Program-made: the position numbers and the translations under genes
Shown here: one piece after another, positions 40,202 through 64,000 of the stretch
Numbering within the stretch: the first letter of the stretch is position 1
How the letters are laid out: each line of letters begins with the position of its first letter
Notes under the pieces: model-generated
The model's database searches: none
What the model was told of the DNA's origin: nothing
What the model saw: the letters and a program-made list of their open reading frames with translations, nothing else
Assembly: GCA_000708835.1 (NCBI GenBank)
Contig: DF237226.1
Location: forward strand, 1-64,000
Length of the DNA: 64,000 bases
Direction of reading: 5' to 3'
DNA from: Klebsormidium nitens
Lineage: Eukaryota > Plantae > Klebsormidiophyceae

Positions 40202-41068
40202 ATGGCTCAAAAACTGGGAAAGTTTAGAGGATATGTCTCCCGTGCTCGTACGGTTGAGCTGGAAAACCTACGTGCCAGGCTGAGATCCAAGGTTCTGAAG
40301 CAGGGAGCAGCTGCCGGGATTCTGTCCATCACCCTCGGTAAGCGATCTCACTCATTTCACGTTACTTGGGAAGAGTCAAAGTTCATATCAGCTGGATACT
40401 CCACTAGCTGACGCCCCTTCTGCACAATCTGGACATGCAGTGGACACCCAATTCACCTTAGAAATCGGAAAAACATTTCTCCGTGAGTCGCCATCTCTCT
40501 TCATCCGTGCGCAATCGCCAAACTCTGAAAGCTTTGGTTATACATCATTATCTCAGCTTCTAACCCAGACCTGGGAGGCGAGGGGTTTAAGGAGAAGTAC
40601 TGGTGAAAGACAGTCAAAGCCACTGGTAGGCTATTCCCTGATCTGGTGTGCCTTCCTGAATCTAAAGTACGCCTGCATTTTGGTCAGCAAAAGCACTCCA
40701 TAGCTGTACCTAACATGCCCTGTGTCCACTATCCAGGCAGTCTGATCCTGGTGTTGAGAACCAATCAGTCTCCTGACCTATGACTAGAAAGGCAGGTCAT
40801 CATTTTGATGCATACCACATTCTGGTTCCGATACTCAACAAGTTTTCACATGCTACCTTCTGCAGTTGGCACGGTGGCGGGACTGATTGTCGTTATCACA
40901 AGCGGGGCTGCGGTGCCGCTGATCATTTCAACTTCCACTCCCATCGCGGTGAAGTTTGCAGTGATCCTCAAGAACGTCCTGGGAGCAGGGCGCGCTCTCC
41001 GCCGGATCCAGATTGTGAGCTTATCTCCATCCCGACTATATCAGGGCTTCGGGCCTGGAGGAGTTTGA
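40202..41068 (+). CDS. Possible small membrane protein of unknown function; 3' end unresolved
   Basis: ATG 40202 (MAQKLGKFRGY...GILSITL), GTAAG donor after 40337, and a phase-compatible acceptor ctgcag at 40866 giving a hydrophobic VGTVAGLIVVITSGAAVPLII segment followed by a GTGAGC donor. Confidence 0.4.
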
Positions 41069-42626
41069 AGTTCAACGCAACCCATGTCATGAATAATGAT
41101 TGCAACCGACACAGAAGGTGCCTTGGCTCTTGGCTTGCACATACTCTCCTTGTATTAGTCACGCCTGCCCACTTTCAACTGTCATCGGGTTCGTGCCCGT
41201 ATTGCCACCCTTTTTTGACTGCCTCTATCGGGCGAGTCCTGGAAATCTCATCAAGCCAGTTGGAGTCCGTGTCACTGTTGCTGAGGCCTCCATTGAACTG
41301 TTTTTTCTTTGTGCCTTTGAGTTCTGCTCTGCTTCAAGATTCCCTTCGCAAGTCTCGAATCAAAGTTGGAGCTGTAGGACTCGCTGTTGTACATTGAGTT
41401 GCTGGGAATTGGACTTACGACGGGTGGAATGGCCTTACTTTTTGCGATCCGCCACCATCTGGCGCTCAGCAGTCCGGCGTCTACACTTTGAGGTGGACTG
41501 CAAAACCATTTTGTCACAAAGAGGTCTTGTTTTGCTCGCAGATTGAAGAGGAGTTGGCCCGCAGGAACAGTCACGCCAGCCATCTGACCGCCTGAATCAG
41601 TCGCCAGAGCGATCGAGCACGTCGTAGATAAGATCGTATAGCATGGCATGGAGCTTGCCCGCGCGGCCGTACTTGAATTCCCGTCGAGTGTACATTTGGT
41701 CCACATGTAAGAGAGTTGTAGTAAGCTACACGAAGATACGATGCATACGACGTAGTGTCAATTAATGCGAACAACTAGTCATATGAACTTGACATAGGGT
41801 GCTTTCTTTTGACCAGAGTTTGAGCTTCACAAATTCGCGACATTACAGCTCCTTCGGTCCATTGCTGCACTTGCGTATTGGAATGTGACGTCATGATGAC
41901 AATTATCATATTGAGATTGTTGGTCGTGTGCGACGCGCAGGTCTCGGCGCCGCGCGGCCGGCCGCTGCTGAGCGAGTCCGATCGAGGCTTATGTTACTTG
42001 GCTAATCATATACGCATTTGAATATATGGTTCGCGGCTGTGCCATGAAATAGAGCGGACAAAGCCTGTGCAATCCGATCGTGCTCGGCGACTCAGCAGGA
42101 TTTGGCCGCCTCTTACGCGGCTTGGACGAAACGCAAAAAAGCCTATCCTTGGGAGAGTTCGGCTTAAGCCAAGATTGTGATCACGTTCCCTCAGACGATA
42201 AGGGGAGAAGGCCCTCACTACCCGGGCTCGTCATGGTCAGAACAAATCAATGACAGCCTCAAACGCGGTATGATTTGAAGGACAACCGCGGGAGTGGTAG
42301 TTGAAACAACCTGCGGAAATTTGATACATGAGCCAAAGCGAGAGTCTACCTCAAAGTTGCCTATCAAAGGAGGCTACTACCTGGCCTAAAGCGCCGCTGA
42401 AGTCCTAGAAAAGACCTCTTTTTGCCTTCCTACTTTCTTTCCCCTACGGTCTATTCAACCGTCGAATCAATCAAAGAAACACCTCTGGTCGCGTTCGATC
42501 TGTGCTCAACCATTGGTTCAAATCCACACTATATCAAAATCCATCTCTCAAGAAGCCAAAATATCCTCACGCTCGCCGTAACTACGAAACTAGAACGTGT
42601 CTCAAACCGGTTCTTCCCGGGGGGAT

Positions 42627-45600
42627 CTACTGGTTTCCAGACCCCTGCTGGTCAGCGAGAGAGAAGGTCGCGCCGCCTTCTCCGCGGGCCGCAGCCTGCT
42701 TCCGGCGCGCGATCACAAAGGCCCCAATCGCGGCCAAAACGAGCGCACCTCCCACACCGAGACCCACGCCAAGCCCCACAGCGACACTATTGCTGCCCCC
42801 GGTCTTCACACCGGGAGAAGGGCTCGCCGGGGTACCGGGGGCCGGGGTACCGGGCGCCGGGGTACCAGCCGGGGGAGTCTTCGGGGCAGTGGTGGGCGTT
42901 GGCGTGGGCGGGTCCGCGGTCACGGTCGCCGTGTGCAGCAGGTAGATTCCGTTCCAGTGGGCGGAATCCGGGGTGTACGTGGCGACCCCACTGACCGGGT
43001 CGTACGTCACCGGGAGGTCTTTGGTGACGTTCCAGGTGCAGCCGAAAAACGCGGAAGCGTCGTTCGGGGGCATGGTCGGGGTACAATCGGTTGCCGTGTA
43101 GACGTCGACCACGTACTGGACCGTCGCGGCCGCGAGGAGCGCGCGTCGCTTGGCTAGAGTGGGAACGCTCTGGAAGGAGATGGATCCCGACCCCGGGGAG
43201 AAGGGCTCGGAGTCCTGAATGAGGTATAGAGCGACTGCGCCGACAACTTCAGTCTTGGGGAGGAGGTCATAAGCTATGGGGATCTGGTCGGCGGTCGGGA
43301 AAGTCACGCCGGTTGCTTCGATCGGGGCCGTTCCGGCGGACGCGAAGCTGAAGCTGGCGACGCTGCCCACTAATTGCGTAACCACCGGTTTAGTGGCCGG
43401 GTCAAAGGTGTTAACCTCGGTCGTAACCGGGGGAGGCGTTGCGGGTGCGGGCGGGGCGGCAGTCGCCGCGACCGCATACAGCACAAAGACTCCATTCCAC
43501 TGCGCCTGCGCCGGCGCAAACTGCGCGGTTTGGCTCTGGGTTACGTAGGTAACCGTGCGGGTTGGCGCGACGACAGTCCAGGTACAGCCCGCGTAGGCGT
43601 CGGCTGACGTGGGCGGCAGTGCGACGGAGCACCCCCTGACGTGGTACACGTCAACGACGTACGCCTTTCCGCTGGCCGGAGCCGGGATTCCGCTGAACAC
43701 GACGGAGCCCGAGAAAGGGTAGAAGGGCCCCGCTGCCGTTTTGCCCTGGGTGAAGAAGACGCCGGCAACAGCGACAGGGGTGATGGTATCTGGCAGGGTC
43801 GCCACGGGCTGGGAAGCGCCCTGGTAATTTACCGCCACTCCGGTGATTGGGTCGAACGCCGACGCCCCAGTCGGTGTGGCACCAACAACCGATGCCGAAA
43901 CGGCGACACTCCCGGGCACGGTAACGGCGAAAGTGGGGGCGGTTTTGGGGTTCGGTAGGGGGACCGTCTCCGAAGCGACGGTCACCAGGCTTGGCACGCT
44001 GATCGTGTGCAGGACGTAGACTCCGTTCCAGGCGGCAACGGACGCCGTTCCGGTCTTGGACGCCGGATCGACGGAAACGGAAACGTTGGCCGCCGCGGGG
44101 GACCATTGGCAGTTGGTGTAGCTGTTGCTGGAAGCGCTCCCCGGAAGTGCCCAGAGGTCGCAACCGGTCGCTTGATAGAGGTCGACTGCGTACTGGAGAC
44201 CGGTCGGTAGAGCGGCTAGGTTGGCGAAGGTGATAGTGGCCGGGGCGGATGTGTTGTAAGGGGCTGGGAAAGAAGAGAAAGAAGGAATATGAAAGTGTGG
44301 AACGACATTAAGATGATTTTGAAATAGCTGCCAGCTAGTGCGTCTTCAAGTAAACGATAGCGTGCGGTAAAATCAGTGAAACGAAGTGAGATGTCTCCCA
44401 AAGAAGGTTGCGAAAGAGCCTTACGTGATTCAGGTTTGAGAGCAGATATTCTACTCGGATGGAACCGATGCAGAAAGCACTTCGCTGCCTGCGTTTAGTT
44501 GAGGGGGTGGAGCACTTTCGTGCCTTCCAAAGTGAAACAGTGGAAGGGGCTGAACTCTGCGGCAGTTTCCTTGATTCAAGCAAGGTGACAAGCAGAGGCG
44601 AACAGTCGAAGTGAGGATATCGCAAACGTAGCAGAGGCCTGCCGACCATGGAAACTCGTTCAAACGCACTAACTTCGCTACAGCACGCAACCGCGGTACT
44701 TCGACAAAGCTGGCACCTGGCTATGAGATCGTCCTAGAAACGAACCAGATATCTTCACGGTTTCCTTTTGAAACTTTCGATTGCTGGCCCACCCTACGAT
44801 AAGAAGACTTACCATTGTTGGCGACGACGAACAGAGCTGCCGCCCGCGAGGACGCGCCCGCGGCCGACGCGGGCGCCCCCGGCACCACGGCCGCGTCCGC
44901 ATACGCTATGGCATAAGCTGTCGCGCTGCCGTCCGCCGGGACAGGCACGCTGAAGCCGAACGTTCCGGCCGTCGCGTGAACGGAACTGTCGTTGACGGCC
45001 GCCGGAATCGCCGCGCCTTGGAACGTCTTCCCGCCGAAGATGGTCGCCGTTCCGGGCGACGTAACCGTCGGGTCGTTGCCGTAAACCCGCGCGAGCAGCA
45101 CGGGCGCGAAGCGCGCGGCGTCGCCCCACCAGACGACCGGCAGCGCGGCCGCCTCGCAGTGCCGCGCGGCCGCGTTGAGGAGCCCGTCGGCCGCGGCGGT
45201 AAAGCACGCGTAGTTGTCGCACTCGGAGCTGGTGTTGCTGCAGGGTGACGTGGCGAGCCCGTATTGGGCGATGAGCTGGAGCTTGGGCAGGAACGTGTTG
45301 ATGGCGCTCTGGATCGCGGGCTGCGTCTCGGCGACCGTGGAGGAGAGCGTGGTATTCTCTCCGGTCGCCGGAATGAGGTAGAGCGGAACTTCGTCGGCGG
45401 CCGCGAGGAGCGCCGCGAGCGCACACGCGTGCTGGTTCGCGGTGGTCGCGCCGTCGCCGCTGTCCAAGCCTGCCGGAAACGGAACGAATGTAGATCAGCT
45501 TCAATCCACTTTTTGGAACGTCATATGGTTGAACTGGTTCTGCATGTTCACCTTAGCAGCTAGAGTTGGGGGTTTAGAAATGGATACTGACGAGGTGCCA

Positions 45601-48600
45601 GGTTCCTGTCTCTTGCCTTCGAAACCCAAATTCCAACTATGAGGCTCCAAGAAACGTAGTCTACGAACCCAGGACTCATTGCTTCTAAGGAAAGAAAAAT
45701 TGGAGATATTTTGTTCCCATGAAAACAATCGGCTGGGCTACTTGGGCCCTCCCTTGCTTATCTGCCTATGGGGACCCAAAACCGAGGAAGAAGGCAGTAA
45801 AAGGAAATCCCGGCGAAGTTTCGCCGAAGGCATTGGACATTTACTCTGGTGAATTAGAACCTCAGAAAACAAATCACACTTACCCGGAGAGTATGCAGGC
45901 GGGGCCGACTGGTCCAGCACGTTGATCATCTTGAGGACGTCCGCCTTCTCCGTCCGCATCATTCCGTTCCCGGTGGCGCAGCCCGTGTCGAGCGGAGCCG
46001 CCGGCGCATACGTGCTGCCCCACGTGATCGCCCACGTCAGCACGCCGAAGTAATCCGCTGTCTGGTACGCGGCCGGCAGGAAAATGTCCTGGTAGCTCCC
46101 GTCGGCCTCGGTGTAATTCACCGGGCTGGTTTGAAGCAGGGAACGGCCCCCGGCGATTTGCTCCGGGGAGGTTTCATCGTTTACGGAAAGCAGGCTGCGG
46201 CGCTTGGAGCCGGGGCTCGGGACGACGAACGGCTTAACGTCGTAACTGCAGACAGAAACCACGTTTTCTATCAGTCGTTGGGTTAAAAAGGTGTCGAAAA
46301 GTTTAAAACATAAGTAACAGTCGGAGCTTCGATCTTCCCCATAAAACACCAGGGATGAAGATGTATATTTGAATCGACTTGCAAATCGTGTTCAAAGAGG
46401 TAAAGGGACCTGCATAGTCCTTCCACTGAGACGAGCAGAACATTGCTGGACGGAAGTATCCTGGGCCGATTAGAAAAGGAGAGCCACCCTGGCGTCGAGG
46501 ATCCGAGAGAGGAGTAGATCCGGTCATTCTTAGCCTGCCTGAATCTTTCATGAGCTTTGCTACTCACAGGCGCTGCCCGTGTCCGCGAGAAGCGACCCCA
46601 GAAGAGTTTCCGCCCAAGTTTTCAAACCCTCATCTCTTAACCCCACAAAACTAAAGCACAATTAATAAACGAGCCCGGATCTAGTTGCGCCACTGACCGG
46701 TATCCGTTCGGCTGGTCGCCCGCCGCTGACGCTGGTGTGCCCGGGTTGCTGATGAAGACGCTGATTGCGATCGTGCCCGGGATAGGGCTCAGAGTGGCGA
46801 CGTTCGAAGCCCCGGTTGCGAGAACGTACTGCGAGCCCCCATTCACACCGTAACGGAACTGGTACTGCAGGGCACCGCTCGGGGCGTCGGCGCTCTTGAC
46901 CCAGTTGACGGCGCTGATCTTGAACTGGTAGCCGCCACCGGAAGTGTACTTCTGCAGGAGGAAAGCTTCGCGTCAGAGGCTGATTGCGTATGCCCAGAGA
47001 AGCGTTGCAGAGTGGCGAAACTTCTCCCCTAAAATCGCCACGACAACTCGAGTGGGTGCTGAAGAACGAACCGCCGAGCAAGATGCCGGTTGAGACCGAT
47101 TCTGCCCTGATTGCGCACTGTTGGTGCGGGAAGTCGTTTGAGCTCCCCTTTGTTTCGCGACAGCTCGTAAAATAGCCAGAGAACCAAAAGGCAAATCTAC
47201 AAAAACGATGATGTTTCGGTCCTGTCTTTCTTGTTTAAAGGCTTGGTTGACATTTATTCAGGTTCGCGGTTTTGCACCAGGGCAGACAGATCATCTCAAA
47301 GTGTTCGCAGTGGCCTAAAGCCCAAACTTTTTCAACTTTTTGAAAGCGTAAAAGTGGTTCGCAAGGGGGGGCTGCTTACGCTGGATGTGCTGACTGTCTG
47401 GACAGTCACGCTGCCCCCCGAGGGAAGGCCAAAGACCGGGAACTCCAGCGAAGCTTGCCCCGCTGACCCGATTCCCAGCGCGTCAGTCCCCTTGAGAGAC
47501 ACCCGGTAGGTTCCCCAGGGCGGAAGAGTGTTCGGTGCGATCGTGATCGATCTGCTGAGCGTGCCAGCCGTGAACGGGTACGACGCTGACGTGGCGACTG
47601 ACGTCACGGCCCACGTGTAGACGGTATTGGGCTCGTCGGAGGAGGCGGTCAGGAGCAGCTTCTTGGAGGACGCAATTCCGCCGGACACGTCGCCACCGGA
47701 AGCAGTGATCGACATTGTGATCGTCCGGGCGGTGGCGATCGTGATCTTGGCGGAGTTGACGACGTTTTTGCGGCCGGTGGAGAGGGGCTCCTTGGATGCC
47801 TGCAGAGTCAAAAAAGACGAATCGCTGGTGAGGATAGGCGCAGATTGCAGTATGGGGCTGAGGGTGGGCACGGGTGCGGAGAATAAACATTTGGGTTTGG
47901 ATTATCAGTGCTACGATAGCTTCGTTCTTATCATGACTTGAGAATATTGTCTAGGGCTTATTAAAAGGGAAGAAGATCCTACTGAGGGCGTCAAATGATC
48001 TTTAAACGCCTTGACGCCCCGAGCCCGCGGAGTTAGTCGTATTGATCGCCCAAGAAAAACTGAGAGATTCGAATTGCGCCGCCCGATCTTGTATCCCCTG
48101 AGATCTTAAGTATATTCTCTCAATCTTAACTCCTTGTAGGTTTTCTGAAGTTTGCTTTTTGGTCGCACCATTGGCCTTGTTCGGAGGCTGCAGTCTGCTC
48201 GCTTCGCCAATTTCTCCGACTCGGGTTAAGACAACGCCGACAAAGACCTTTCTTGCTTTGCACTTTGCCCGCCATCTCCTTCTTCAAGTTCTCCCCCCAC
48301 AGACCCAAAGCTTGGAAAAGACACTCACGCTGACAAAGAACTGGTAGATTCCGTCCGCGAGAGTACCCCCCGGAATGGTCACGAACTGCCCAAAGTTGTT
48401 TGTCGCGTCCGCCTGGTAAAGCGCATTTACTGCGCCGTCCGGAAGCGCCTGGGAGCACGTCCACGTGTACTGGAACGGGTACGGAGTTCCGTACAGGTCC
48501 GCTGAGTTGTCCGGGTCTTTGCTAACCGCCAGGAGGGTTAGGTCCTTGGCGGAGTTGGCTAGGCGGTCTCCGCCGGAAACGGAAACGGTGATCGGTTGTG

Positions 48601-51600
48601 GGGTGAGGCTGAGAGTGACCTGCCCGGTAGAGGCTTGGCCGAGGGAGCCGCCTTGGATGATTGCGACGGAAACCTGGAAAAAAAGGAGGAGCGCAGAATT
48701 AGCTCTCTCTTTGCCGAGAGTGCACCAGAGTGAAATGATGCGGGTTGTGCCCGGCTGTTACCGGTTGTGACTTCGTTCAACGTACTTCGAGGGCTGACAG
48801 AAGCAATATGGCGTAGAATACTGGAAACGAACTGGCAGCCTGTAGCCTGTCAATTGCAGATTTCCATGGAGCAAGTCTAGAGCCACTACTACCAGAGGAG
48901 ATACCAATCATGTTGTGTAAAGTTTCATCCGCACGTTATAGCTACAGCTGTCAGATACAGGTAAAGACTTTCCGGCTGCAGGTAAGGGAAACTTTTAGAA
49001 GCAATCACGTAACAGAGGGAGGCGCTGCGCCAATTCCCGCGAAATCTTCACCACAGAAAAGAAAGTGAAGGCTTTCTCATTCCGGGTGTCTCCTATTCTG
49101 AAAAACGTACTCGAAGCAATCAAAGGAAGACGCGCATTCTCATGAAATGTTGACCAGAGGGAAGGTATTCAAGGCCTTATGAAATCACCTGGAAGACGTA
49201 GTCGACTCCAAGGCGCATCGCGGAACCCGGAAGCAGCAGCGTAGGCGAAGAGAAGGACGCCGTGTACTTGGGCGATCCCAAATTGGTCGGGTCGATGATC
49301 GGCCCAGTCAGCTGCTGCCACGTGTAGCTCAGCGGGACGTCCCCGCCGCCCGGCACGCACTGCCCGGCGACCCAGATGAACTTCCCGGGCACTCTCCCGG
49401 ACGCCGTCACTGAGAAAATACTGCTGGAACGTCCGACGGTCCGGCGCTCCGCGCCAGTTCCGGGGGTGGTTACGACCGGAACCGCCTTGCTCTGCTTGTT
49501 GATAGTGACGGCGACGGAAGCGCTGGAGAGGCCCACGAAGTTGGTCGCCGTGACGGTGAAAATGTAGGACGTGCCCGGTTCCAGGTCCGTGGAACCCAGG
49601 GTGAGTGAGGAGCGGGAGCCCTCTGCGGTGTAGTCGGCAAGCTTGGCGGAAAGCGCGGCCGTGTAGTCGTTGTTCGGTCCCTGAGAATGGAAAAACGACT
49701 TGGTTAGTGTCGTGGGCTGTCAGGATTCGAACCGTCAAATGCGTATACTGCTTTCAGGAGCGCGTCAAATGCGTCTTTCCTTGCTTTGTTGAGCTGACGT
49801 GTCGAAGATCTCACGCGTCGAGAAGCGATCCACGCTGCTGACAGAAATGATTCGTCCGGAAACACAATATTGAACGACTTTGAACCGCACCTTGAGGGCT
49901 ACTCAACAAGCAATGCTCAACAAAAGTCTGCTGAATCAACAGAGATAAAATTTGCTTGATTGACATCTCCAAACGATCGAGATCAGAGACGTGCGCCCTT
50001 CAATCGCCCACCTGGACGAAATAGCTGAAGCGCAGCGGCCGGCCGCCGCCCCCGGTTGACTGCCCCGCATCCAGAGTGACCGGGTCGCACACCCCGACCG
50101 ACGTGGGCGCAGACAGGCTGACTACGGGCGTGGGGCCCACTTCCGGTCCGTCCAGCGGAACGGAACCGGACGCGTTGTACGAGTTCGACGCCGCGTTCCC
50201 GATCGTGTTCGGAAGGAGATGGATCGAGTCGGGGGACGCGCTTCCGACCGGTTGGATCGTCGCGTTGTAGCCAAACTGGACGGTTAGGGTCGCCTTGTTT
50301 TGCCAGACACACGTGTACCGCGCCTGCCCGAGCTTGGCGACCACGGTTGGGTCAAGAACGGTGGTGCACATCGCGGTTTGCGAGACGGAGATTTTGGGGT
50401 TAGTGGTGCCCATGTTGGTGTCCTGGTCGAAGGTGATGACCAGCGAGTTGAGCAGGTTAGAGAAGCGCGCGGCGACCAGCTTGGGCGCGGGCGCGGGGGA
50501 GATGTCCGCCGGGAAGGCGCCGATGACTGCGAATAAGCAATCGGTCGCGCGTAAGCCAGGCTGATTTTCTGAGATGATTTGTTTAGGCCCACAGGACCAG
50601 GTCGGGGTGCTTGTGCATTAGGGTGGGTAGGGATATGAGCACGTTCTTTTAAGGCTTACGATCTCCCATGTCGGTCGGAGCTTCTAAGTACTATATTCGT
50701 TTGTGTGGTCTTTCTTGGGTTTCATGAGAAACTGCCGGCGTCGGTGACGAGACTTCGCAGAAACGAAAAGGTTGTTCGAGAGAACGCTATTGAAACTTGA
50801 CAGGGAGCTGTCATTAAAGTAAGAGTCGGCAGAAACAAGGTTCCCGGGGGTTGACACGATCTTTGTCTCCGAGAAAGGTGTGAGATGGTGAAACCTGGAA
50901 CACTCTGCCATGCATTAGCAAGCTGCTTGAGTTCCGTATGATATAACTGTTTCCTTTCAGCGGAAGCCCTTACAACACAGCGCCAATGTCTTTTTGAGAA
51001 GTCAGCCCAGCCCCTTCGAAGAGGACGTCGCAGGACCGAGCCAACCATAGGCGACCAGAAATGCACCTTCCGGGCAAGATTTGTCGCCAAAAGCAGGTTG
51101 CAAACCGAAATATGGGCCGTTCAATCAAATAAGTCTCTCCGATGCTGCTGGTACGCTTTGAGATATGAGGCTCTTTTACCCGCCTGAAAGTTTTATTACC
51201 GACCGATTCCAGGTGCACAAACGCTTACCAGTGGGCCCGTAAGCCACGATGACGTTGACCGTCCCATACTTGACGGGCGTGTAAGTCACGGCCGCCTGGC
51301 AATCCGTACCGTCCGCCGCGCACCCTGTGAAGATGACGCGGACGCTGGCAGAATCGACTGCGTCACTCGGGGAGAAGGTGACCTTGGGCAGGAGGCTGAC
51401 GACATTCCCGGCGGCGTCGCGCGCGGTGACGGTAAAGGCCGCGGCAGTTCCGGCCGTTCCGACGGTGATTCCGTTGCCGGTGACGGAGCTGGTGTTCCCG
51501 GAGACGGCGCCCGGAACGACGATCACCTGCGGCGTAGGGCGCGTGAAGTCAGGTGACGTTTGGGATTATAGATGATGACGGCTTGCTCATGATTTGTGTC

Positions 51601-54600
51601 TTACAAGGTCAAGTTCTGATAAACACGAAGATATTCGCGCCGAATGTTGTTACACTAAGTGGTAAGCTGTCCTTATTGTCATTGCATAGTAAGAGAGATT
51701 TCATCTAAGTGGGGCAAGATCATTTCTGGTATTACCTGAAGTGAGCACCTCTCAATCACACGAGATGCGGACTGAAAGGAAGTCATAATACACGCAATGT
51801 CTGGTTTACTACATTCACAGGGGAGCATTTTAGATCAGCGTTCTTTCGACAATCAAAGAAAGCTTCCATCAGGTTTTGTAAGAAACAAAAAGCCTAAGGC
51901 TTCGCTCGCTCCTCACAGAAGTCAGACCGTGGAAATCCAAGCTCAACACTTGATGGCGAAGCACGCTGCTCTGCTTGAGAACTGCCCTGTTCCTTGGACC
52001 CGCACATCCTTGAGTTTCTAACCTAGTTGCAGGAAGCCCAAATCTCTCTTGACCATCAAAACCTTGGGGACGGGTGGGGGCAAGCAGAAAGGGCGGGCAC
52101 GGGTGTGGAGCAGGTGAGAGAATGCGTTTACCTTTATAATTTCAGTGAAGCTTATCTGACCATAAGTTGGCTACTCTGACGGAGCTGGCTTTTGAGCATT
52201 TTCAACAAAAGGAGAAGCTACGGAAGAAGGAATCTGCGCAGAAGCACCCCTCTCTCTCCCTGGTTACGATGCTCTGCAGTGCGTAAGCCCACCTGGAAAT
52301 TGAGCTGGTTATAGCCTTCCTAAGAACTTATGTGCACGATCATCAGCGGTGCGTAAACATACCTGGAATGGAGACCCCGGCACGACAGCGGAGGCGTCAA
52401 CGGCGTCTGCCACCGTGACCTGGTAAGTGCCCACGAGGCTAGCGGTGCAGGATGCTTGGAACTCAGAAGAGACGGCGCTTTCGGCGACCGAGCACTGGAG
52501 CGGGACCGGGCCCGCATTCATGATCACAAACGACTTGTCGCCGGTTTTGTAAGGGTTGCCGTACACGTCCCTGCAGAAGGTAACCTTGAAAGCGTAAGAG
52601 GAATTCCGATCACTGGGGCGGCATGGAAACAGAATTGACGGGGGTTGTGTCGCTGACATGGAGAGACTCGTGCTGTTGCGTGCAAAAAGACTTCAGAGTT
52701 CAAAGCACGAATCCGTAAGAAACGAAAACATTCCTGATGCAACGTGCAATGCACACCGCTGCTGAGTACTTTGTGCGATTCATGAGCGCTCGTCCAAACT
52801 TCAATACAAGACACAAGAAGGTGCCCGCACTTAAAGTCTCGTCCTTGCCAGCATTTTGACTCTGATACAATTCGATTTCAAAGAGCCCGTTCCGAAATGC
52901 CCATGAGTCTCGGCACATGAAACCTCCAAAACACGCCGTACTTGAAATCTGCAACCAAATAGAGCCTAAGTCTTTAAACCTTGAGATAGAAAGACTAGAG
53001 CCGGCGAAAACCCACTTGGCCACAACTGTGAAGGCGAGCGGCGTTCCGGAGAGAACCGTGGTCGCTGCCGCGGGCGCGGGCCGAATCGCGCACTGGGAAA
53101 TGTAGAAGTTGGTGTTGACGACCGTGATTAGCATCGGCTGCGGGTTAACAGCGGTCACGACATCCCCCTTTCGCAGCGACACTGTCAGGCTGTAGACGCC
53201 CGAGACGGTCGCCGTGTAGCGGAGCTCGTACGTCCCGTCTTGCTTGTTCACGAGCGCGGCTTGCACGGTGGCGGGGCCCGTTAACACCGCGGTGTAAACG
53301 TCCCCCCCGGTCACGGCGTTGTAGACCTGCGCGTTGCCATTGGCGTCATAGGACTTGACCAGGATGACGTCCTCCGTCCCGGCCACTCTGACGTCAGCCG
53401 GTGAGAAGGGGTCGGTTCCCCCGAGCTTCAGAAGCTTGGCGTCCTTGGCAGAAGTCGGCCCCGGGGAAACTTGAACCGTAACCGGGGAGTTTGCGAGCTG
53501 CTTGCTAGAATCGGCGTAGCTCTGCAGCTGGATTGAGAGGGATCCCGCGACGGGGGGAGTGAACGTGACCTGGTACCGCCCGGTTCCGTCGGAAAGGGCG
53601 ACCGGGGTCAGTACTCCTACATTGGGTACAATCGCCGAGAAAACGTTCGCTTCGCCGGTAGACTTGATGTCAAGCCCGTTCTCGTCGCTGGGCTGGATGA
53701 AGAACGAGGTTTCTGTTCCGACGGTTGCCTTGAGAGCGGAACTGAGCGGACTTCCGGTAGCGTCCACGGCCTTGGAGGTGGCCGGAGACACCGGCCCCGG
53801 CTGCTGCTTCAGGGCGACGCTGCTCGTGGCGACTGTGGTTCCGTCATACTTAACCGTGATGGTTAGGCCGTTCGGGTTAGCGTTAACCTGGGCGAGGGTC
53901 GGGGTGTAAGCTGCCCGGTAGACGCCGTTCCCGAGGCTCGTGACCCCCCCGGTGTTAAGATTGATGCCCGTAGGGGAGAAGGTTACGGTGAAGGCTTTCC
54001 CGGTTGGAACCGCCGGGACGATGTTATGTTGCGCATCGCGCGCGGTGATCAGGAAGCTAGCTTCGACACCGGAAGCCGCCCCCACGGTGAAACCGGATCC
54101 AACCACCAGGCAGTCGGTTGCGGAAACCGCGCCGGGGTTTACGGCGATCGAGAGGGGCTGCCCGGTCGCCTTGTCGAGAACCGCCACCTGGTTAACTTCT
54201 AACGAGAGCCTAACCAGCCCTGACGTCATCGGGGTCACGCTCACGGTGTAAATCCCCGTGGTTTGGTCCTGGGTTATGGTCGGGGTTAGGTCGGACGACG
54301 CCCCCGTCAGCCCGGAGACCGAGGTTAGTTGCAGGTTGGCCTGGCTGACGAGGTTGGTCAGGACCGGGTTAGCAAACTGGTCCACGAGCTGCACCGTGAA
54401 GGTGCCTGCCGCCCCGGCGGTTAAGGCAGAGGGGAACGTAACCACGGTAAGCTGGGGCGCGGGGGCCGCCGGCTGAACAGTGACGCTCTGGTTACCGGTC
54501 GCCGGGTAGAATTGCTGGCTGCCAAGGCTGGCGGCAAGCTGGTACGTACCGGCGACGTTCGTTAGGAGCGTGGCCTGGTACGTACCATCGCCGTTGTCGG

Positions 54601-57600
54601 TTACGTTAACGGGGGACTTGACCGCCCCCCGGGCAAACTGCACGGTGAAGCGGAGGCCGCCTCCCCAGAGCTGGTTGCTGTTTGCGTCCATTGCCGTGAA
54701 GACGACCGAAGCCGGTACGCCCGCCGTCATGGCCGGAAGAGCGGAAACCTGGATGTTGGCCGGACTGACCAGACCCGGAACGGTGGTCAGCGGAACCCGG
54801 CTGACGACCGTGTCCGTGCCGGAAGCTGACGTCAGCGCGACGGTCAGGAAGCTCTTCTGGTTGGTCGCGAGCAGGCACGGGTAGCTGAAGCTGTACCGCC
54901 CGGGGCTGGCCGGCGTCATCTGGCCGGAAACGGAGTCCGTTCCGGTGACGCTGACGGAGAAGGCGTCGCTGGTGGATGTCGCCGCGTTTGAGAGGGCGTC
55001 GTAGGCGGTGAGGGAGACGACACGTGTCCCCCCGGCGGTGCAGTTGGCGGTGGAAGCGGTGGAGAGGCGCGACGCGGCCGCGGAGGTCGCGCCTGGGAGG
55101 ACCACGACGGAGTAGGGGCCGCCGCCAAGAGGAGCGTTGGAGCGAACAATGGTCACCTGGTCCCAGAGAGCAAAGATTTTGCTTCAGAACCAAACAAATG
55201 GATTGGTATGAAACATAATCAAATGAAGGATTAATTTCTCTAAAAAGGGGTCGAGACCGTCATTTTGGAGATGCTTCTGCTTCAGTGCGCACCGAGCTGC
55301 CTGATCGGGGGAGTTGAAAAGTTGAAGGTCTTCCTGTACGAAGTGCCTGGTACCAAATTTATAGGCTGCCAAAGTGCATCAACCAGAATTCCGACACATA
55401 GCCCGAATCCAACAGCTTGTTTGACAACCACTGGCGCTTTCTTCCGCGCCTGTCAAGGCAGGCAAGCCTCGGATATCCGCCAAAGATATGAAAAGGCAAC
55501 GTTTTAGAACAACACTTTGGTTACGGAGCTTCCAGTCTCCAACTTGAGCGGCCCCATTTGTCTTGCAGGGCATCAGAAATGTCCAGACATCCTGTTTTCC
55601 TTCGAAAAGCAAAGTCTGCACGTTTGGACTCACCGTGTAATTTCCGGCCTGTTTGGGCGTGTAGTTCACTTCGTAATGGTCAGTCACAAAGCTTTGCGAG
55701 TCGATCGGCAAAGTCGTCCCGCGTCTGCCGTTGACAACTAGGTAGAGCTGCACCCCGAAGACAAGGTTGTCGTCTGACGCCGTGTTGAGGAAGCTGTCGC
55801 GCGCGTAGATTGAGAACGTGGCCTGCGCGCCCGCGGAAAGGGCCTGGGGCGAGGATACCGTTCCGATTCCGGTGCCGGTAGCGTAGCAAGCGGCAGTTTG
55901 GACGGCGCCTGGAAAGAACGCAGGGATCAGATCAGAGACAGCAGAGGTTTGATTTAAGGTGGCGCAACTTCAATAGAATCCGGTGTTGAGATGTTACCAG
56001 AATCAGACCCGTCCTCGCTTGCTTGTCTCGGTTCATTCGGTCCGCATCACACAAATTGAGAGCGAGAACAATAGCCAACTGGACATTACTCTGGTTGCTA
56101 ACGTCACGAGTGTGTGTGTGCAACCTGCGTCTGGTTCTTTCGCTGTCAGGTTCAGCAGTGTAGAACCAAAAACGTTCTTGAGAGTCAGTCACATCCAACC
56201 GTTGAAGAAAATCTCTGCCGAAACCTAAAACCCCAAAATCCTAAACATCCGTGCCGCTCACTCGCTCCTCCGCTCCTCTGCGGCAAACTTCAGCTTACCC
56301 GGAGTTGAAACCCTCAGCACCATAACAATTCCACTGAATTCTGTGCACTCATATTCCTGCCGTCCTTTTTGACGTATAGAAGCTGAAAAGCGCAACCGCT
56401 TACCGGACTTGACGGAGAGTCCATTGAAGCGCTGTGCCGTGTTCATCACAATGACGTCCAAGTAACTATCTCCGCCGGCAATTGCAGTGTAGGTTGCCAG
56501 ATAGAGAGATGTGCCGCCCGCCCCGGAGGAAAGGGCCATTGTGGCGTTCACAGTCATGCTGGAGTTCTGGGCGGAAGTGACGATCGCGGTCGGTGGGTTA
56601 GCCCGGAGGTCGGCAGCGCTAACCGGGTTGCCACCTAAGCCAAGCACAGAGAAGGAAAGTGGGTCAGAAGAGGTAATCCGGGATGCCACCTGTGCCAAGA
56701 ACAGATAAGGAAGGTGGGTTAGCCCGGAGGTCGGAAGCTAACCGATTTGCTACTCATGCCAAGCACAGAAAAGGAAGTTGGGTTAGTCCGAAAGTCGGAA
56801 GCCTTGAACGGTTTGCCAGCTGTGTCAAGGACAGAAAGTGAATGCTCTAGGAACGTGAAGGGACCGCCCACTTCTTTCCTTCATGACAATGCAAGGGATA
56901 AGGCTTTGTGGACTCTTGAACTGCGAAGCTGAGACAGGGATGCGACACTTCGAACTTTGTTCTTCGCCGTAATCTCCATACCGCGCAGCCAAGCTCTTCT
57001 GAGAGTCAATCGCTTTCTTCTCTGTTTGTAGACCTGAGAAAGCACTGTTGGATCGGCCTTTGCAGGTGCAGAATTGTATTTGCACCAGCTTGGCACAGAA
57101 AGAAGAGCGAACTGATACTTGAAAAACAAAAAGTACATGGAAAAGAGAACTACTTTTGTAGACACGAGGTAAAAGTACGCCGAAGCGCTCACCCGCATCC
57201 CTGAGGATGATCTGGAAGGTCGACTTGACGCCAGCCTGCGCTGACGTCACCCCCTGTCCCCGGAGCTCCGTCTGCATTGGGTCCGGCAGTCCGGTGGCCA
57301 CGCTGAAGGTGATGATGTTGGATGATCCCCCTACCACCGCCGCGCCGATCTCCGGGTGCTGGGGGTTTGAATACAAGACCTGGCACTTGTAACTCCCTGC
57401 CATGAACGGATTGTACCCGGCCGAAAAGACGGTGGTCCCGTTTGCCAAGATGGAAATGGGGTTTAGGGTCTCTGTGCTGAGGTCGGGGAGGGTTATGATA
57501 ACCGAGAACGAGTCCGCACCGGAAACCAGGTAGTCTTGCGCGTTCTTGTACTTGTCGCGCGGAGCAATCTGGACGGTGAGCGGGTTAGGGACGCGCCGAA

Positions 57601-60600
57601 CGGGGTTTTGGGGGAAGATGACTACGCTGGTGCCCATGACGTCAGTCACTGCCGACGCAACCGTCATCGCGAAGCCGGCCGGATATGTGGTCAGCACCTT
57701 GCCGTTAACCGACACGTTTATTGTGAACATACCACTGACGGTGGGCGTGAAGCTGGCGACAAACTGGCCGTTGTTGGCGTCGACGAAATTGAGGCTGAGC
57801 CCCGCTGACGTCACGCCGCCGGCTGACGTCACGCTGGCCGCCACCGTGGAGCTCTTCCCGTTCGACAGCGGCAGGCCGTTGGCGTCGATCAGGGTGAGCG
57901 TCAGCTTCGCCGCCTGCCCGGCGACAATGACGGAATTGATGCCGTCTCCGGTGACGGTCGTCTGGCCGGCGTCAGCCGCCCCCACGGCGGGGCGAACGTT
58001 GAGCGTCTGGGGCCCCACTGAAATGGCCTGGCCGTCGAAAGTGACGGTAATCTGCTGCGTTCCGGATGCGGATGCCGTGTAAGACACCACGCACTGAGCG
58101 GGGTTGTTCGCGTCCGGCTGCGGGCTTTGCGCGGTGATCGTCTGCGCGCCGGAAAAGGTCACCACAAACTTCGAGCACATCGCGGCCGCGGCCGCGCCCG
58201 CGGCCAGGACCGGGTTGTTGTTCGCGTCCTGGGGTGTAAGATAGATAAGCGCGGAGGTGCACCCGGTTCCGGTAAGACACGCCAGGGCGCCCTTCAGGCC
58301 GGAACCGGAAGCCAGGCAGTTGCTCGGGGAAGCAATCCCCGGGGTTACGAGCCCGGCGTAAGGGCTCCCCTGGAGGGCCGGACCGTCCGAAAAGCTGAGC
58401 GCGGTGATAAGCGTCCCGGCTTTGAGGGGCGTGTACGGAAGAATGATCTGCCCGGCACTTCCTACCGAGGGGCTTCCAACCGTCACCGCCTCCGCCCCCG
58501 AGAGAGTGACGAAGCTGCTGGAGCTTCCCACGCGCACCTGGAAGCTGGCGGTTAGCCTGCTAACCAGGCTGGTTAAGTCGTCCTGGGTCGGGTTACCGAA
58601 CTGGTCGCGTGCCTGGATGACGAGCTGCGTCGCCACGCCAGCTACTGTAGAGGCCGTTCCTATTCCGTTTCCGCTGGCGGAGAAGGCGGAGAGCTTCTTG
58701 GCGCCGGCCGGAACCTGGAAGTTTTGGAGCGTGGCGGAAGTGCCCGGGCTGCCCTTGACCGGGACACCGTTCACCCGGATCGTGACGTTATACGCGCCGG
58801 CCTGGGTGGTGGTTAGCGTTAACCCGTAGGTTCCGTCGTAGTTGTTAGCGACGGAGAACCCGGTTGAAAGGAGCCCGGCGCTCGGGGCGGTCTCCAACAG
58901 CCGGCGCATGACGCTGCCCTGCCCCTGCCCGCCGCCCAGCTGCGCGTTGGTGACGGCAGCACCGCTGACGTTGTAGTACGAACCGGGGACGTAAGCGCCC
59001 AGGTTGCCAAAGGCGTCCTTGGTGGTCAGCAGGAAGGATGACGTCAGCCCGGCGGCGCTCTCGGTGGTGCTGACGAGAGTGACGGTGGATGACGCGGCAT
59101 CTACCGAGGCGGGGGCGACTGCAATTTTGAAGGGGCTCCCGGCGATCGGCGCTGGTCCTCCGTCTCCGGTGTTGAGCGTGACGGCCAGGGAGTAAGCGAC
59201 CGGGGTAGGCAATCCGCTATCAGAGGAGGCCGCGGACTTGGTCGCCGAGAAGGAGATGACGTAAGATCCTGGAAGAAGCGGGTGGAGGAGGTTACAGAAA
59301 GAACGGAGAAGAACGAGTTGAGGAAAATGATGAAGAAGGAAGGAGTTCATTTCCACCCTGGTTTGTACTCACAACTCTCGAAGCTGGACGGCGCAGTTTC
59401 TGAAGGAAAATCTGATTCGGTGCTTGTTGTGCAAGGCCCGAAGACCTTCAAGAAAGTTCTTTCGTTTCTGCACAGTTCGATACTCCGGGGCAACAGACCT
59501 TGCTGCTCCTTAAAAGTGATTCATTTGTCTTGGTCAAAGGTGCATAAAGCAACTCAAATTTCTGCAACCATCAAAGGTTGCGAACTTTTGAACAATCGAG
59601 AATTGAGTTTTCACCACTGGACGCTTTTAACAGAAGGTCTCAGCAAGACTAAAACGCATAAACAGATCGACAGGGAGATCTGAATGAGCGTTCCCCAGTC
59701 CCATAACGGGTCACTTCCTCTGCACAAATCTCCCAGAACTATAAGGTAGCAGGAAGGACGCACACAAAGAAAGGCTCTACTCTTGAACAGCTCTGCCTCA
59801 GCGCACATGGAGCTCTTCGACTTTTCATATTCCTCACCGTTCGTGTTGACAAGGCTGTAGGTTGCTCCCGTCGTCTTCCCATCCATCGCAGTCGGAGGAT
59901 CGAACGTGACGGTAAACGTGTCGTCCGTCTTCGTCTGCAGCTTCCCATAGATGTCATACGTCGTCACGATCAGCTTCGTCGTCTGCCCCGCCACGATCGT
60001 TGTCTGCGCGCCGGCCGCGAGCGCGCCCGACGCGCCCGCGAGCCGCGCCGTCGTCTTCGCGGCGCTGGAAAGCGCTGCGCTGATCGTAACCGCGAAGGGC
60101 GCGCCAGACCCGATGACGGCCGTGCCGACGTATATGTATACCTTATGGGGTCCAGACACGACCGCCGTATAAGTCGCCGTCAGCGTCCCGTCGTTGTTGT
60201 TAACCACGGTCCCGGGGAACCGGGAGTTAGTCGCCGTGGTGACCACCTGGACTGAGACCGCGCCGGGGTTAAGGACCGGGTTACCGTAGGCGTCCTTGCA
60301 CGCGATGGTGAAGCTGGTCGGGACGCCGGCCTGGCCCCCGGTGGAAACCGCCGGGCCGGAGGCGCTGGACCGGGCGGCGCTCGGCGCGCCCGCGTTAACC
60401 AGAATTTGCTGCGGCTGGCCGATCGGTACAGAGACCCCGGGGAAGGCAGTCTGGTTGGCGGTCACGGTTAAGGTATACGTGCCCGCGGTTTGGAGTAACC
60501 CGATCGCGCTGTAGATGCGCTGCACGCCCTGGTAGCGCGCGCACGGGACGTCGAGAGTCGCGCCCCCGGAAGCAGTGAACGTGCCCTGGCAGGAGGCCCC

Positions 60601-63486
60601 GGTGTCCATCGGAACGTAGTTGCTGAAACTGTCGTAGAGGAAGACTTGGATCTCCTGGGCCTGACCGGCGGTCCAAAGGTTCGGGGTTTTGAGTGGCGCC
60701 GAGAAGGCGCCCGTCAGGAAACTAGAGGTGGCGCTCGCGAGGCCGGGGGTCACGGTAACAGTTGACGCCCCGGTCGCAATGGGCTGCCCGGCGAGGAGCA
60801 CCGACAGCTGGTAACTGCTCGCGGTATTAAGCGTTACCGAGGCCTGGTAGCTTTGGTTGACGAAAGCGACCGGGTAATCCCTGATCGCTCCCCCGGTCGG
60901 CATCACCCGCACCGAAAACGCGTCCGAAGCGGCGGGGTAGTTGTCGCCGTACGCAACCGGGTTGCTGTACGCGTCCGTCGGAACTATAACCGCCTGGACG
61001 CTCTGCCCGGCGGTGATCGCCGCGGGCGCGAACTTCGCCGCGAGGGTGGTCATGCCCGCTGCGGTGGGGCCCGGGAGGATGACGAGCGGCTGACGAGTCA
61101 GTGACGTCAGCGGCGTATCGCCCATGGAGACCGTCATCACGTACGAGCCCGCTTTGGTGTAAGAGTAGGAGACGGTATACGTGCCGTCTTTGTTGTCAAT
61201 TACGCTGGTCGTGAAGGCGCCCTGCGCGGCGCCCGCGGCGGGTGGCCACACTTTCATTTGGAAAGTCGCCCCCCCTTGGAACAGCCGGATGGCGTTTGAG
61301 TCCACGGCGGTGATGACGAACGTGGCGGTCGTCCCTGCGACTGCGCCGGCCAGGCCGACGCCGGAAGCTGACGTCTTGGTGACGTCAATCTTGCGGGTGG
61401 TGGTGGCGCTGAGGATGGAGAGCGTGACGGGGCTGCTGACGTTGGTCTGCGTCCCCACGTTCTGGCCGCCGAGCATGACTTGCATCTTGTACGTGCCCGC
61501 GTTCGCGAAGTTGTAGTTGACGCGGTACGTACCGTCGCCGTTGTCGCTGACGTAAGCGGAGCAGTTGGCGGGCGTGCAGGACGGGTCGAGCGCGCGCGCG
61601 TAGAAGGAGTCGCCACCGGTGGACTTGGCGTTGCCCAGCGAGTCGCTGATAAGATGAAGACATCAGAAGCTTCATTATTTGCTTCGTGGTCAGATTTCTG
61701 TGAAACAAGCAGGCTTGCGTTTTGGAAAGTTAAGAAAGCTTGTGGCTCAGCTTAACAGATCCGCATGATACTTACTATTTGAGACCACCTGTTCAAGCTC
61801 GCCCAATGAGATCGAAGCACTCTTTAACCATGCTGAAATTGTTGAGTATTTCTAACAAGTACGCGTAAGAACGGCTTCTTGAGAGCCAGCCAATGACGAG
61901 AATGGAGGATAGGAGTTTTCGTCACTCAGTGGAACTAGATTTCAAAGAATGATCTTTCATCCATCATGTCAAGGCTAGCCCGGAGAAAAGCCCAAAATTG
62001 TTCTGGTTGGTGCCTCAGTGCTGCACGCACAGAAGTAGTCTTGAAACCAACATGAGTCTCATCAACATAGAAATTCAAACACGGCTAAACGAAGATCAAT
62101 CTGCCAACAGAAACTGTGCAGATTTCAAATCAAAGCAGCTCACAAATAACGGAACACACCTCTTCTTGTGCTTATAGCGCTCTCAAGATTCCGAGATGGT
62201 CGTCAAATTCGGATGCATTAGGCAGAGAAGCACTTACACAGCGGTAACAGTGAAGCTGCTGCCTACGGCCGCGATGCTCCCCGCCAGCCCAGTTCCTCCC
62301 AACCGACACAGCGCCGCACTAGTTGGGCCGCTCGCAATCGTCCCCAGGAAAGGACCAGCAGCTTTGCCGTTAACCAGGATGGCTGTCGACAGAAGTCCGG
62401 GCGTGGCCGCGGTGTAAGTGATGACGTACTGGCTCGTATTCCCGTCAAAAGTGGGGCCTTGGAAGGGAACGGTTGCGACGCTTTTCGTCAGAGTGCCGCT
62501 CGTGACCGTCATGCTGACGGCCAGCGCGTCAGCCGTGGCGTTGCCGCTCGTGCGAAGGTTGTTGTACCTGCACAGAAATAGCGACCGGCTTCTGCTGGGG
62601 GAATGTCAAAAGCCTAGACAGGATTGGAATATCCGAGTGGAACGGATTGGACGTCAGCAGTTCTCGCGCTGAAGTTTTATCCGCTCATTGCGGAGGAAAA
62701 AATGGAAGTACATTTCAGGTCCGAGTTTTACAGGGTCGACGAACAAAGATTGAATGCGGCGCTAAGAAGATGCTTGTAAGGCCATAAGAGACCAAAGCTT
62801 GACGAAATATTCCTTCAAAGTCCAGGGAACGACACAAAAACGACAGGCACGGGCAGATCAACAGGCTTGAAGCGGGCTTTCAAAGCTTCCTCGTGACGTT
62901 TTCCTAGCCTCCTCACAACCGTGCCAGCTTTTTACGTCCGCTGAATGATCGAATCCACCGAAAAGGTTTGCTGCTCAGAGTGTCTGTAGTGTCTGTAGCC
63001 TCTTGACAATCTCATTCGGAAGTTCTCTAAAAGGAGAAGTCATCACATGAAGAAAGCTCTCTGACGGGGCCAGACGCCAGAACAGTTCGCGGCCTTCAAC
63101 GAGCGAGCGCACACAAGTCACCTCGAAAAACAAAGATCCTCAAAACTTACGCGTCGAAGACCTTGATGAAGAAGCTGCCCGGCACTCCCACGGTCCCAAA
63201 GTACATGCTCTCGCCCGACGCGGTTGCAAAGATAGGCGCGCCCGCCTGCACTTGCAGGCTGTTGACGTTGCCCGTGTCTTTGGACGCCACGTAGACGTGG
63301 ATGTCGTAACGGCCAGCCTTGGTTAGGGAGTAACCGAAGGTATAAAACCCGTTTCCATAGGAACCGGTTATGTAGAGGTTGGTTGAGCCGAACGAGAAGG
63401 AAGTTCCGTCGGACAGGGTGAGGCGCGTGCCGACGAAAAGCGACGCCGGCGGAACGGCGGAGCTGGCGGGATTGCCAAAACCGTCC
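42627..63486 (-). CDS. Giant single-pass membrane protein, 3' part (at least 4127 aa; start beyond the window): filamin-type Ig repeats, REJ/PKD-like region, helical region, three GAIN/GPS-like repeats, TM helix and short tail
   Basis: 17 exons: 63486-63151, 62567-62238, 61645-59838, 59268-57193, 56634-56404, 55908-55634, 55156-53016, 52570-52363, 51526-51229, 50526-50012, 49680-49189, 48673-48329, 47799-47380, 46951-46698, 46245-45884, 45469-44813 and 44263-42627. Total 12385 nt; all 16 internal introns are GT-AG with matching phases and no internal stop. Confidence 0.93.
42705..42790 (-). other. C-terminal transmembrane helix with GxxxG motifs, followed by the RRK stop-transfer and a 26-aa tail
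   Basis: VAVGLGVGLGVGGALVLAAIGAFVIA-RRKQAAARGEGGATFSLADQQGSGNQ*, preceded by a Pro/Thr stalk (PPTPTPTTAPKTPPAGTPAPGTPAPGTP). Confidence 0.9.
46698..50526 (-). other. REJ/PKD-like region (domain of the giant gene)
   Basis: VTLDAGQSTGGGGRPLRFSY, VSGGDRL...LTLLAVSKDPDN...FQYTWTC, ITIAPNTL and AVNWVKSADAP...LQYQFRY resemble REJ-module motifs of polycystin-1/REJ proteins, from recalled consensus. Confidence 0.7.
51229..63486 (-). other. Array of 23 filamin/ABP280-type Ig-like repeats (domain of the giant gene)
   Basis: Recurring S..G.G...AG....F.I...D..GN....GG..F.V......DN.DGTY...Y....G.Y...V...G....GSPF pattern. I counted 23 D-x-x-G/S-N-type hallmarks by eye. Confidence 0.9.
56590..56835 (-). 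repeat. Three degenerate intronic copies of the 3' splice site and exon start of giant-gene exon 56634-56404
   Basis: True site: TGTGCTTGGCTTAG|GTGGCAACCCGGTTAGCGCTGCCGACCTCCGGGCTAACCCAC. Copies: CTTGGCACAG|GTGGCATCCCGGATTAC (about 56690), TGTGCTTGGCATGAG|TAGCAAATCGGTTAGCTTCCGACCTCCGGGCTAACCCAC (about 56752) and CTTGACACAG|CTGGCAAACCGTT...CCGACTTTCGGACTAACCCAAC (about 56820). Confidence 0.88.
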
Positions 63487-64000
63487 CTGGGAAAGAAAGT
63501 GGAGTTGTGAGTTTATCGGCGCAGAAAATTCGAAGTTAGTTTTTGAAAATGGTTCCTGGGATAGAGGAGCGAAGTTCTGAGACTCAATGCTTCTTCACTG
63601 AAGATCCGACTCCTTTCAAGATAAAGACGGAAATTGTGTGGAGCACTGTAGCGAAGGCATACACCAAATTTCTCGAATGGCGACAGTCCAATAAAAAGAG
63701 AGCGGGACAGGCCATCTCGCCTTTAAAAGCCAACTGGCAGTAAGATCAAGAAGCTAGTTCCTTCAGCAGACAGACCGAAAGTCTCTGGAAATGTCTCTTC
63801 TTCTTAACATCACAATCTGGCAGCAACACATTTATTGGGAAGCCACAATACTTCATTCATAGATAATTGGCCTGATTATCAGAAGGCTCTATCTGAAAGT
63901 CTCATCAGACCAGAAACGCGAACCCAACAAGACACTCAGACGGCTGCCAGAATGGATCAATAGTTGGGCAAGTCGGAACCTACTTGAGCTGAACCCGGAA

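Follow-up and report, generated by a model that had tools for sequence, protein, structure and literature searches.

A giant single-pass membrane protein in Klebsormidium nitens with a predicted filamin-type Ig rod, a REJ region and three GAIN-B/ZU5-type repeats

Polycystin-1 and PKD1-like proteins, the sea-urchin REJ proteins and Ectocarpus Esi0130_0068 have in common a long Ig-like ectodomain, a REJ region, helices and a near-membrane GAIN-B sandwich. According to a 2025 survey, adhesion GPCRs and PKD1-like proteins are the only families known to have GAIN domains, which are cleaved at an HL|T/S triad before the last strand (PMC11697300). GAIN, ZU5 and Nup98 go back to a common ancestor (PMC10084454). 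The ZU5 domains of ankyrin, UNC5, PIDD and CARD8-NLRP1 (FIIND) are cytoplasmic and are followed by UPA or death domains. Fibrocystin/PKHD1, a single-pass protein of very large size, has TIG domains at its N-terminus, is processed by a proprotein convertase and is shed; its likeness to the protein described here lies in the TIG fold, and we know of no filamin rod, REJ or GAIN-like repeats in it. FUS1 and GEX2 are single-pass membrane proteins of the green lineage with extracellular Ig repeats of the filamin/invasin class.

The locus analysed here lies in a 64,000-nt stretch of Klebsormidium nitens contig DF237226.1 (the window) and resembles each of these systems in part. Its predicted order of parts resembles that of the polycystin-1/REJ group, but it has three tandem sandwiches where they have one, a single TM helix against 6-11, and filamin-type repeats rather than PKD repeats; the HL|T/S triad and any PLAT or channel domain are missing. 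Repeats 2 and 3 are predicted to fold like the GAIN domains of adhesion GPCRs (CD97, BAI3, CELSR1 and GPR126; Z 7.4-9.3, rmsd 3.2-4.0 Å over 130-147 residues) at ~10% identity, whereas a 7TM part and a GPS nucleophile are absent and a stalk keeps the last strand away from the membrane. The predicted fold is likewise that of the ZU5 domains, in tandem as in ankyrin ZU5-ZU5 and apparently non-cleaving like ankyrin, although here the repeats would be extracellular, disulfide-bearing and placed after REJ. Compared with FUS1/GEX2, the protein would be 6-8 times longer, with ~35 repeats instead of 7 and with TIG, cadherin-like, REJ and GAIN-like parts in addition. Cytoplasmic filamin begins with a calponin-homology (CH) actin-binding domain and has no TM helix; here a TM helix is present, and the N-terminus of an ortholog gives no CH match and has TIG and cadherin-like units instead. 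The protein is best read as a long adhesin that crosses the membrane once and has a neck of polycystin type, and it lacks some of the features by which FUS1/GEX2, PKD1 and cleavable GAIN proteins are defined.

Within K. nitens, the hypothetical proteins KFL_006850040 (GAQ90790.1), KFL_009430010 and KFL_004580045 contain the same ~175-aa repeat, in two copies in the first two, and KFL_006850040 also has a stalk, a TM helix and RRKLL. All three are uncharacterised, 21-28% identical and, as annotated, much shorter. Short Klebsormidium membrane proteins (L002:486-1739, L004:10001-12465, P0003, P0010 and P0051) have two ZU5/GAIN-B-type repeats, a Pro stalk and a TM helix, and some of them carry RR(K)LL in the second repeat. 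No description of the full architecture, or of green-algal REJ proteins, was found in the literature searched, which took in few subscription journals, with a homolog search that was length-limited.

Gene structure, transcripts and homologous loci

The minus-strand frame at 42627-63486 consists of 17 exons with matching phases (Table 1), totalling 12,385 nt or 4,127 codons plus a stop codon at 42629-42627. Introns are 331-836 nt long, 16/16 are GT-AG, and exon GC3 is 0.71-0.88 against an intron GC of 0.43-0.50. The first-pass annotation had proposed a phase-consistent 17-exon frame of at least 4127 aa, and the same exons were recovered here.

Logan transcript contigs were compared with the interval 45400-51390, where they cover the exons and skip all seven introns exactly. 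All junctions tested, the seven between exons 9 and 16, are spliced precisely in contigs of one run (X1) and several also in two others (X2 and X3); the filamin-to-REJ junction, 51229/50526, is among them. One contig runs from exon 9, which holds the last filamin repeat, to exon 12 in the REJ region, and a second starts in exon 12 and reaches exon 16. Because the contigs cover exons only and skip the introns exactly, the gene is spliced as modelled in exons 9-16; the other nine junctions (1-8 and 16) rest on phase and on homologous loci. In the interval 42627-48700 exons make up 3,675/6,074 nt (0.61), and four sequencing runs of one study contain a similar share, 46-57%, of its words; transcript contigs of the gene are present in 3/3 runs compared, all of the gene's own strain. 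The gene is real, spliced and conserved.

Homology searches were run exon by exon or on natural open frames. Relatives of the last exon are 84, 64, 57 and 43% identical and those of exon 7 are 90, 71, 60 and 59% identical, all on JGI or Logan contigs. Close relatives were found only as such contig loci and as K. nitens paralogs, the latter being weaker and of the C-terminal repeat. Two to three homologous loci show a matching exon series, and an ortholog on a JGI contig has the same exon chain 1-17 with one additional intron within exon 3. In every exon pN is well below pS, with dN at 0.2-0.8 and dS, which is near saturation, at ~0.7-2; all exons are under purifying selection. No downstream synteny was seen between the window and the homologous loci, and metagenome scans with exon 3 and with an exon-16 alignment, both pattern-based and weak, gave no match. 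Run SRR23617307 holds two divergent copies of the gene (L012/L009 and L008, with last exons at 43% and 57% identity), which are either paralogs or derived from two species.

Upstream of the part equivalent to the window, the ortholog has ~3,000 further codons in large high-GC3 exons, a count that may omit small exons. These encode three TIG-like units, of which two match Pfam, ~12 more filamin-class repeats, and several beta-sandwiches of cadherin-like type that match PF12733 (E 4e-21 and 9e-16). Because the ortholog adds ~3,000 aa upstream, the whole protein would measure about 7,100 aa, of which about 58% falls in the window. In the ortholog, the hydrophobic start of an ORF at L011:4510 is a candidate signal peptide with a putative splice link, and a further candidate for the N-terminus is an exon of 45 nt with which the first TIG strand becomes complete. 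An RRMLL at L011:6582-6630 lies in read-through just past the likely donor of the ortholog's first TIG exon and may be an alternative exon end or chance.

Other features of the window were recorded alongside. At 56590-56850, in intron 4 and the beginning of exon 5, the real acceptor and exon-5 start are closely preceded by three degenerate copies in tandem, with 42-49/76 nt identical and a period of 55-66 nt; they are possible cryptic acceptors. Outside the gene there are a 675-codon minus-strand open frame without a Pfam or NCBIfam match (22698-24722) and two exon-like plus-strand frames with weak Pfam matches, one to PP4R3 (32523-33131, E 3e-5) and one to the FANCL-type RING (40777-41394, E 2e-3).

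Table 1. Predicted features of the gene and their positions in the window.
Feature	Position	Strand	Remark
C-terminal ~58% of predicted giant type I membrane protein, 17 coding exons	42627..63486	-	5' end beyond 64000
Exons 1-6	63486-63151, 62567-62238, 61645-59838, 59268-57193, 56634-56404, 55908-55634	-	
Exons 7-12	55156-53016, 52570-52363, 51526-51229, 50526-50012, 49680-49189, 48673-48329	-	
Exons 13-17	47799-47380, 46951-46698, 46245-45884, 45469-44813, 44263-42627	-	
Rod of 23 filamin/ABP280-type Ig repeats, FUS1/GEX2/invasin class	51229..63486	-	exons 1-9
RRLL in insertion inside rod repeat 9	58895..58906	-	RKLL / RRLL in two orthologs
Cys-containing conserved beta module leading into first REJ module	50012..50526	-	exon 10
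REJ region, FnIII/PKD-like modules	46698..49680	-	exons 11-14; PF02010 collinear on exons 12-14 in homologs
Two tandem RxLL (KRRSLL, GRSLL)	46134..46199	-	between REJ and helical block
Helical block, position of GAIN subdomain A	45075..46082	-	exon 15 end and first 130 aa of exon 16
ZU5/GAIN-B-type repeat 1	43995..45020	-	repeat profile; split by intron 16
ZU5/GAIN-B-type repeat 2	43464..43985	-	GPS-equivalent strand WNGVF at 43485-43499
ZU5/GAIN-B-type repeat 3	42921..43427	-	WNGIY at 42942-42956
RRALL in low-pLDDT loop (371-376) of repeat 3	43134-43145	-	
Pro/Thr-rich stalk	42789..42914	-	15-nt tandem repeat at 42825-42866
Single transmembrane helix	42711..42785	-	GxxxG-like Gly spacing
Basic stop-transfer residues, 26-27 aa cytoplasmic tail, stop codon	42627..42710	-	

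From the rod to the cytoplasmic tail

A self-built repeat HMM, which is circular for scores but not for repeat count, was run exon by exon and placed 23 repeats in exons 1-9 at a spacing of ~110 aa, the number first proposed. Pfam Filamin (E to 2e-43) and Ig_GEX2_N match exons 3, 4, 6, 7 and 9. The mean pairwise identity among the rod repeats is ~22% and the duplications are therefore old. A profile of 16 rod repeats matches the Dictyostelium gelation factor at 1e-32, E. coli FdeC at 4e-18, filamin C at 1e-15 and FUS1 at 3.5e-13; for exon 7, the next proteins beyond the orthologs are bacterial adhesin/invasins (in a length-limited protein search). By these comparisons the rod repeats belong to the FUS1/GEX2 fold class and show no special closeness to FUS1/GEX2 themselves. 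The whole protein would have about 35 Ig repeats.

The module encoded by exon 10 is 61-71% identical in orthologs and matches no Pfam family; pattern-based and weak scans of prokaryotic and viral sequence with this exon gave no match. In the REJ region that follows, PF02010 matches the window weakly (exon 12, E 1.6e-4). At the homologous locus L008 it runs collinearly over exons 12, 13 and 14 (model positions 69-182, 186-321 and 326-384), with matches summing to ~70 bits against a cut-off of 25, and two further loci, L005 and L012, each have collinear matches on two exons. We accept the predicted REJ domain; the REJ-like modules of the first-pass annotation are thus faint in the window and collinear over consecutive exons at homologous loci. 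In the helical block, four to five helices are predicted before repeat 1 with low model confidence (pLDDT 39.5), and they precede repeat 1 only, repeats 2 and 3 having no helical subdomain. In GAIN domains, subdomain A has 2-6 helices and packs against subdomain B.

The C-terminal repeat is present in three copies of ~175 aa each; the C-terminal half of repeat 1 matches the repeat profile at iE 1.8e-17 and its N-terminal half weakly, at iE 0.23. Exon 17 was modelled from a 6-sequence alignment (five homologs added) with a mean pLDDT of 67 and values mostly of 70-90 in repeats 2 and 3. The best Foldseek match of this model is ankyrin ZU5-ZU5 (ZU5A-ZU5B, E 1.4e-4). A wide VIA structure search placed ankyrin ZU5, CD97 GAIN (Z 9.3, rmsd 3.4 Å, 133 residues), BAI3, CELSR1, CARD8 and GPR126 at the top. 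In a second structural comparison the first 13 rows were ZU5/GAIN/FIIND chains and one axonemal chain (Z 7.3-9.4), below which the scores dropped to Z 5.9 and unrelated sandwiches; a ZU5 match in this comparison had Z 8.1 and rmsd 3.1 Å over 125 residues. Z scores of 7-9 are each middling alone; the fold claim is made because two repeats and two programs agree on one superfamily. In these models, repeats 2 and 3 have the ZU5/GAIN-B fold, of the 12-14-strand subdomain B type. An Atlas fold search gave no clear match, with ZU5 as the nearest named cluster (a lead only) and one PLAT/GPS cluster at TM 0.28-0.31. By sequence, 13 repeat sequences matched none of Pfam GPS, GAIN and ZU5 (PF00791) at E<=5, the repeat profile matched no solved structure, and in a length-limited search it found one more K. 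nitens protein only. Axonemal doublet proteins of sperm, Chlamydomonas and Leishmania (PDB 9fqr_Hn, 8glv_AE and 9y6s_9f) also match the repeat fold at Z 6.6-7.8, hinting at further ZU5/GAIN-fold members.

At the GPS-equivalent position, all three repeats and their homologs read xWNG(V/I)(Y/F); the residues were matched to the GPS by the location of this motif, which precedes the last strand. Because the motif has no Ser, Thr or Cys, autoproteolysis is unexpected, and the three GAIN/ZU5-type repeats would have lost self-cleavage. An LHT that closes repeats 1 and 3 was considered as a GPS triad and rejected; its order is wrong and it follows the last strand. The GAIN-like ectodomain first proposed is borne out as a predicted fold but not as one cleavable GAIN, its place being taken by three tandem sandwiches.

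The remaining parts of the first proposal (helical block, three beta repeats, Pro/Thr stalk, one TM helix and short tail) are all present. The TM helix, with a hydropathy of 2.38, is the only peak above 1.8 in the window frame, and the stop codon follows 27 codons later. The N-terminus is predicted to be luminal because basic residues lie on the C-terminal side of the helix. The 28 N-glycosylation sequons of the protein and the paired Cys of the C-terminal repeats fit an extracellular location. The cytoplasmic tail is not conserved in two homologs (P0037 and P0038).

RxLL motifs, the proposed tether and its rivals

Arg makes up ~2% of the protein, yet four R-x-L-L motifs are present, against 0.38 in shuffles (0/2000 reach 4). 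An RxLL is kept at each site in most orthologs although the surrounding loops vary; KRRSLL is invariant in three loci, and P0038 is without the motif in repeat 3. We take RxLL to fit the S1P/SKI-1 consensus. In plant pectin methylesterases (PMEs), RRLL/RKLL-type motifs are processing sites (PMC11494411), and S1P-type SBT7 is found across Archaeplastida, SBT1-5 having arisen after Klebsormidium, from Coleochaetophyceae on (PMC6713707). The motifs suggest cutting by a site-1 protease instead of self-cleavage.

The best explanation, to which we give a probability of about 0.5, is that of a tether between the membrane and the wall, mucilage or substrate, which matures through cutting in its RxLL loops and can shed its ectodomain. 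It would be a type I plasma-membrane glycoprotein of ~7,100 aa, anchored in the membrane and extending into the cell wall or beyond it. Possible ligands of the TIG and cadherin-like sandwiches at the ortholog's N-terminus are polymers of the wall, mucilage, the substrate and adjacent cells; the Ig repeats would serve as a spacer of ~150 nm (estimated at 4-4.5 nm per repeat); and the neck of REJ, helices and triple GAIN-B/ZU5 would keep the rod off the membrane. An S1P/SKI-1 subtilase probably cuts at the RxLL loops in the secretory pathway. After a cut inside repeat 3, the ectodomain would stay on its membrane stub only via the folded sandwich, and load or turnover could then release it. Because the tail is short and variable, it suggests anchoring more than signalling. 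Of the "very long adhesion or mechanosensing receptor" in the first-pass annotation, the long adhesion protein remains the best reading, while "receptor" is weakened by that tail.

More tentatively, the protein may be a plant-lineage single-pass adhesion receptor whose REJ-GAIN module was triplicated to give tandem ZU5/GAIN-B sandwiches and no longer cuts itself; site-1-protease cuts at the RxLL loops would have restored a cleaved state that force can separate. This would be a convergent rip cord for wall or substrate attachment, like those of Notch and adhesion GPCRs, in an early terrestrial alga, and the protein would be the largest member of a small Klebsormidium family that shares the module.

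A mechanosensor resembling polycystin-1 or adhesion GPCRs, in which pull takes the cut GAIN-like sandwich apart and the stub then signals via the TM helix through a partner channel or kinase, seems unlikely. The succession of REJ, helices and GAIN-B fold is the PKD1 order, a conserved putative cut site lies inside the membrane-proximal sandwich, and the Gly-rich TM segment suits helix packing. However, there is a single TM helix with no PLAT, channel or 7TM part, the tail is unconserved in the two homologs, and tethered-agonist geometry is absent because a 40-aa Pro/Thr stalk parts the last strand from the membrane. Slightly less likely again is a stage-specific adhesin with which zoospores or germlings settle on surfaces and which is shed after attachment. 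Klebsormidium forms zoospores, the anatomy and the putatively sheddable ectodomain would be the same, and the Ig class includes bacterial invasin-type adhesins; transcript contigs in 3/3 runs of the study compared (P1) count weakly against it.

A relative of FUS1/GEX2 or of the sperm REJ proteins that serves cryptic gamete recognition, an option raised in the first-pass annotation, is improbable. In sea urchin, mammals and Ectocarpus, REJ proteins count among the gamete candidates (PMC4700764), and both the Ig_GEX2_N matches and the FUS1 match to the rod-repeat profile point the same way. Against this, the gelation factor, FdeC invasin and filamin C outscore FUS1, the FUS1/GEX2 ectodomains are made only of ~7 Ig domains (bioRxiv 2021.09.03.458930; PMC13601591), and sex is unknown in Klebsormidium (PMC6290024). 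No exon shows fast change (dS being near saturation), the gene is transcribed in every run compared, and a 150-nm spacer is poorly suited to pre-fusion contact, so that gamete recognition finds no support here. That the rod and the REJ/GAIN-like parts are wrongly joined separate genes, or form an intracellular filamin-like scaffold, is very improbable: neither the 5' end nor a signal peptide is seen in the window and SAP215, a green-algal filamin-like protein, is described as cytoplasmic (PMC4494055), but contigs link exon 9 to 12 and exon 12 to 16, independent loci have the same exon chain, and the TM helix with its C-terminal-side basic residues sets the N-terminus luminal.

If the models hold, REJ together with three extracellular GAIN-B/ZU5 sandwiches on a single-pass protein of a streptophyte alga would widen the range of GAIN and would connect cytoplasmic tandem ZU5 domains with extracellular GAIN domains. 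Its rod would also be a case of the FUS1/GEX2 Ig class in a role that is probably not gametic. For the question of how an early land-colonising alga attaches its membrane to wall or substrate, the protein offers a concrete, testable candidate.
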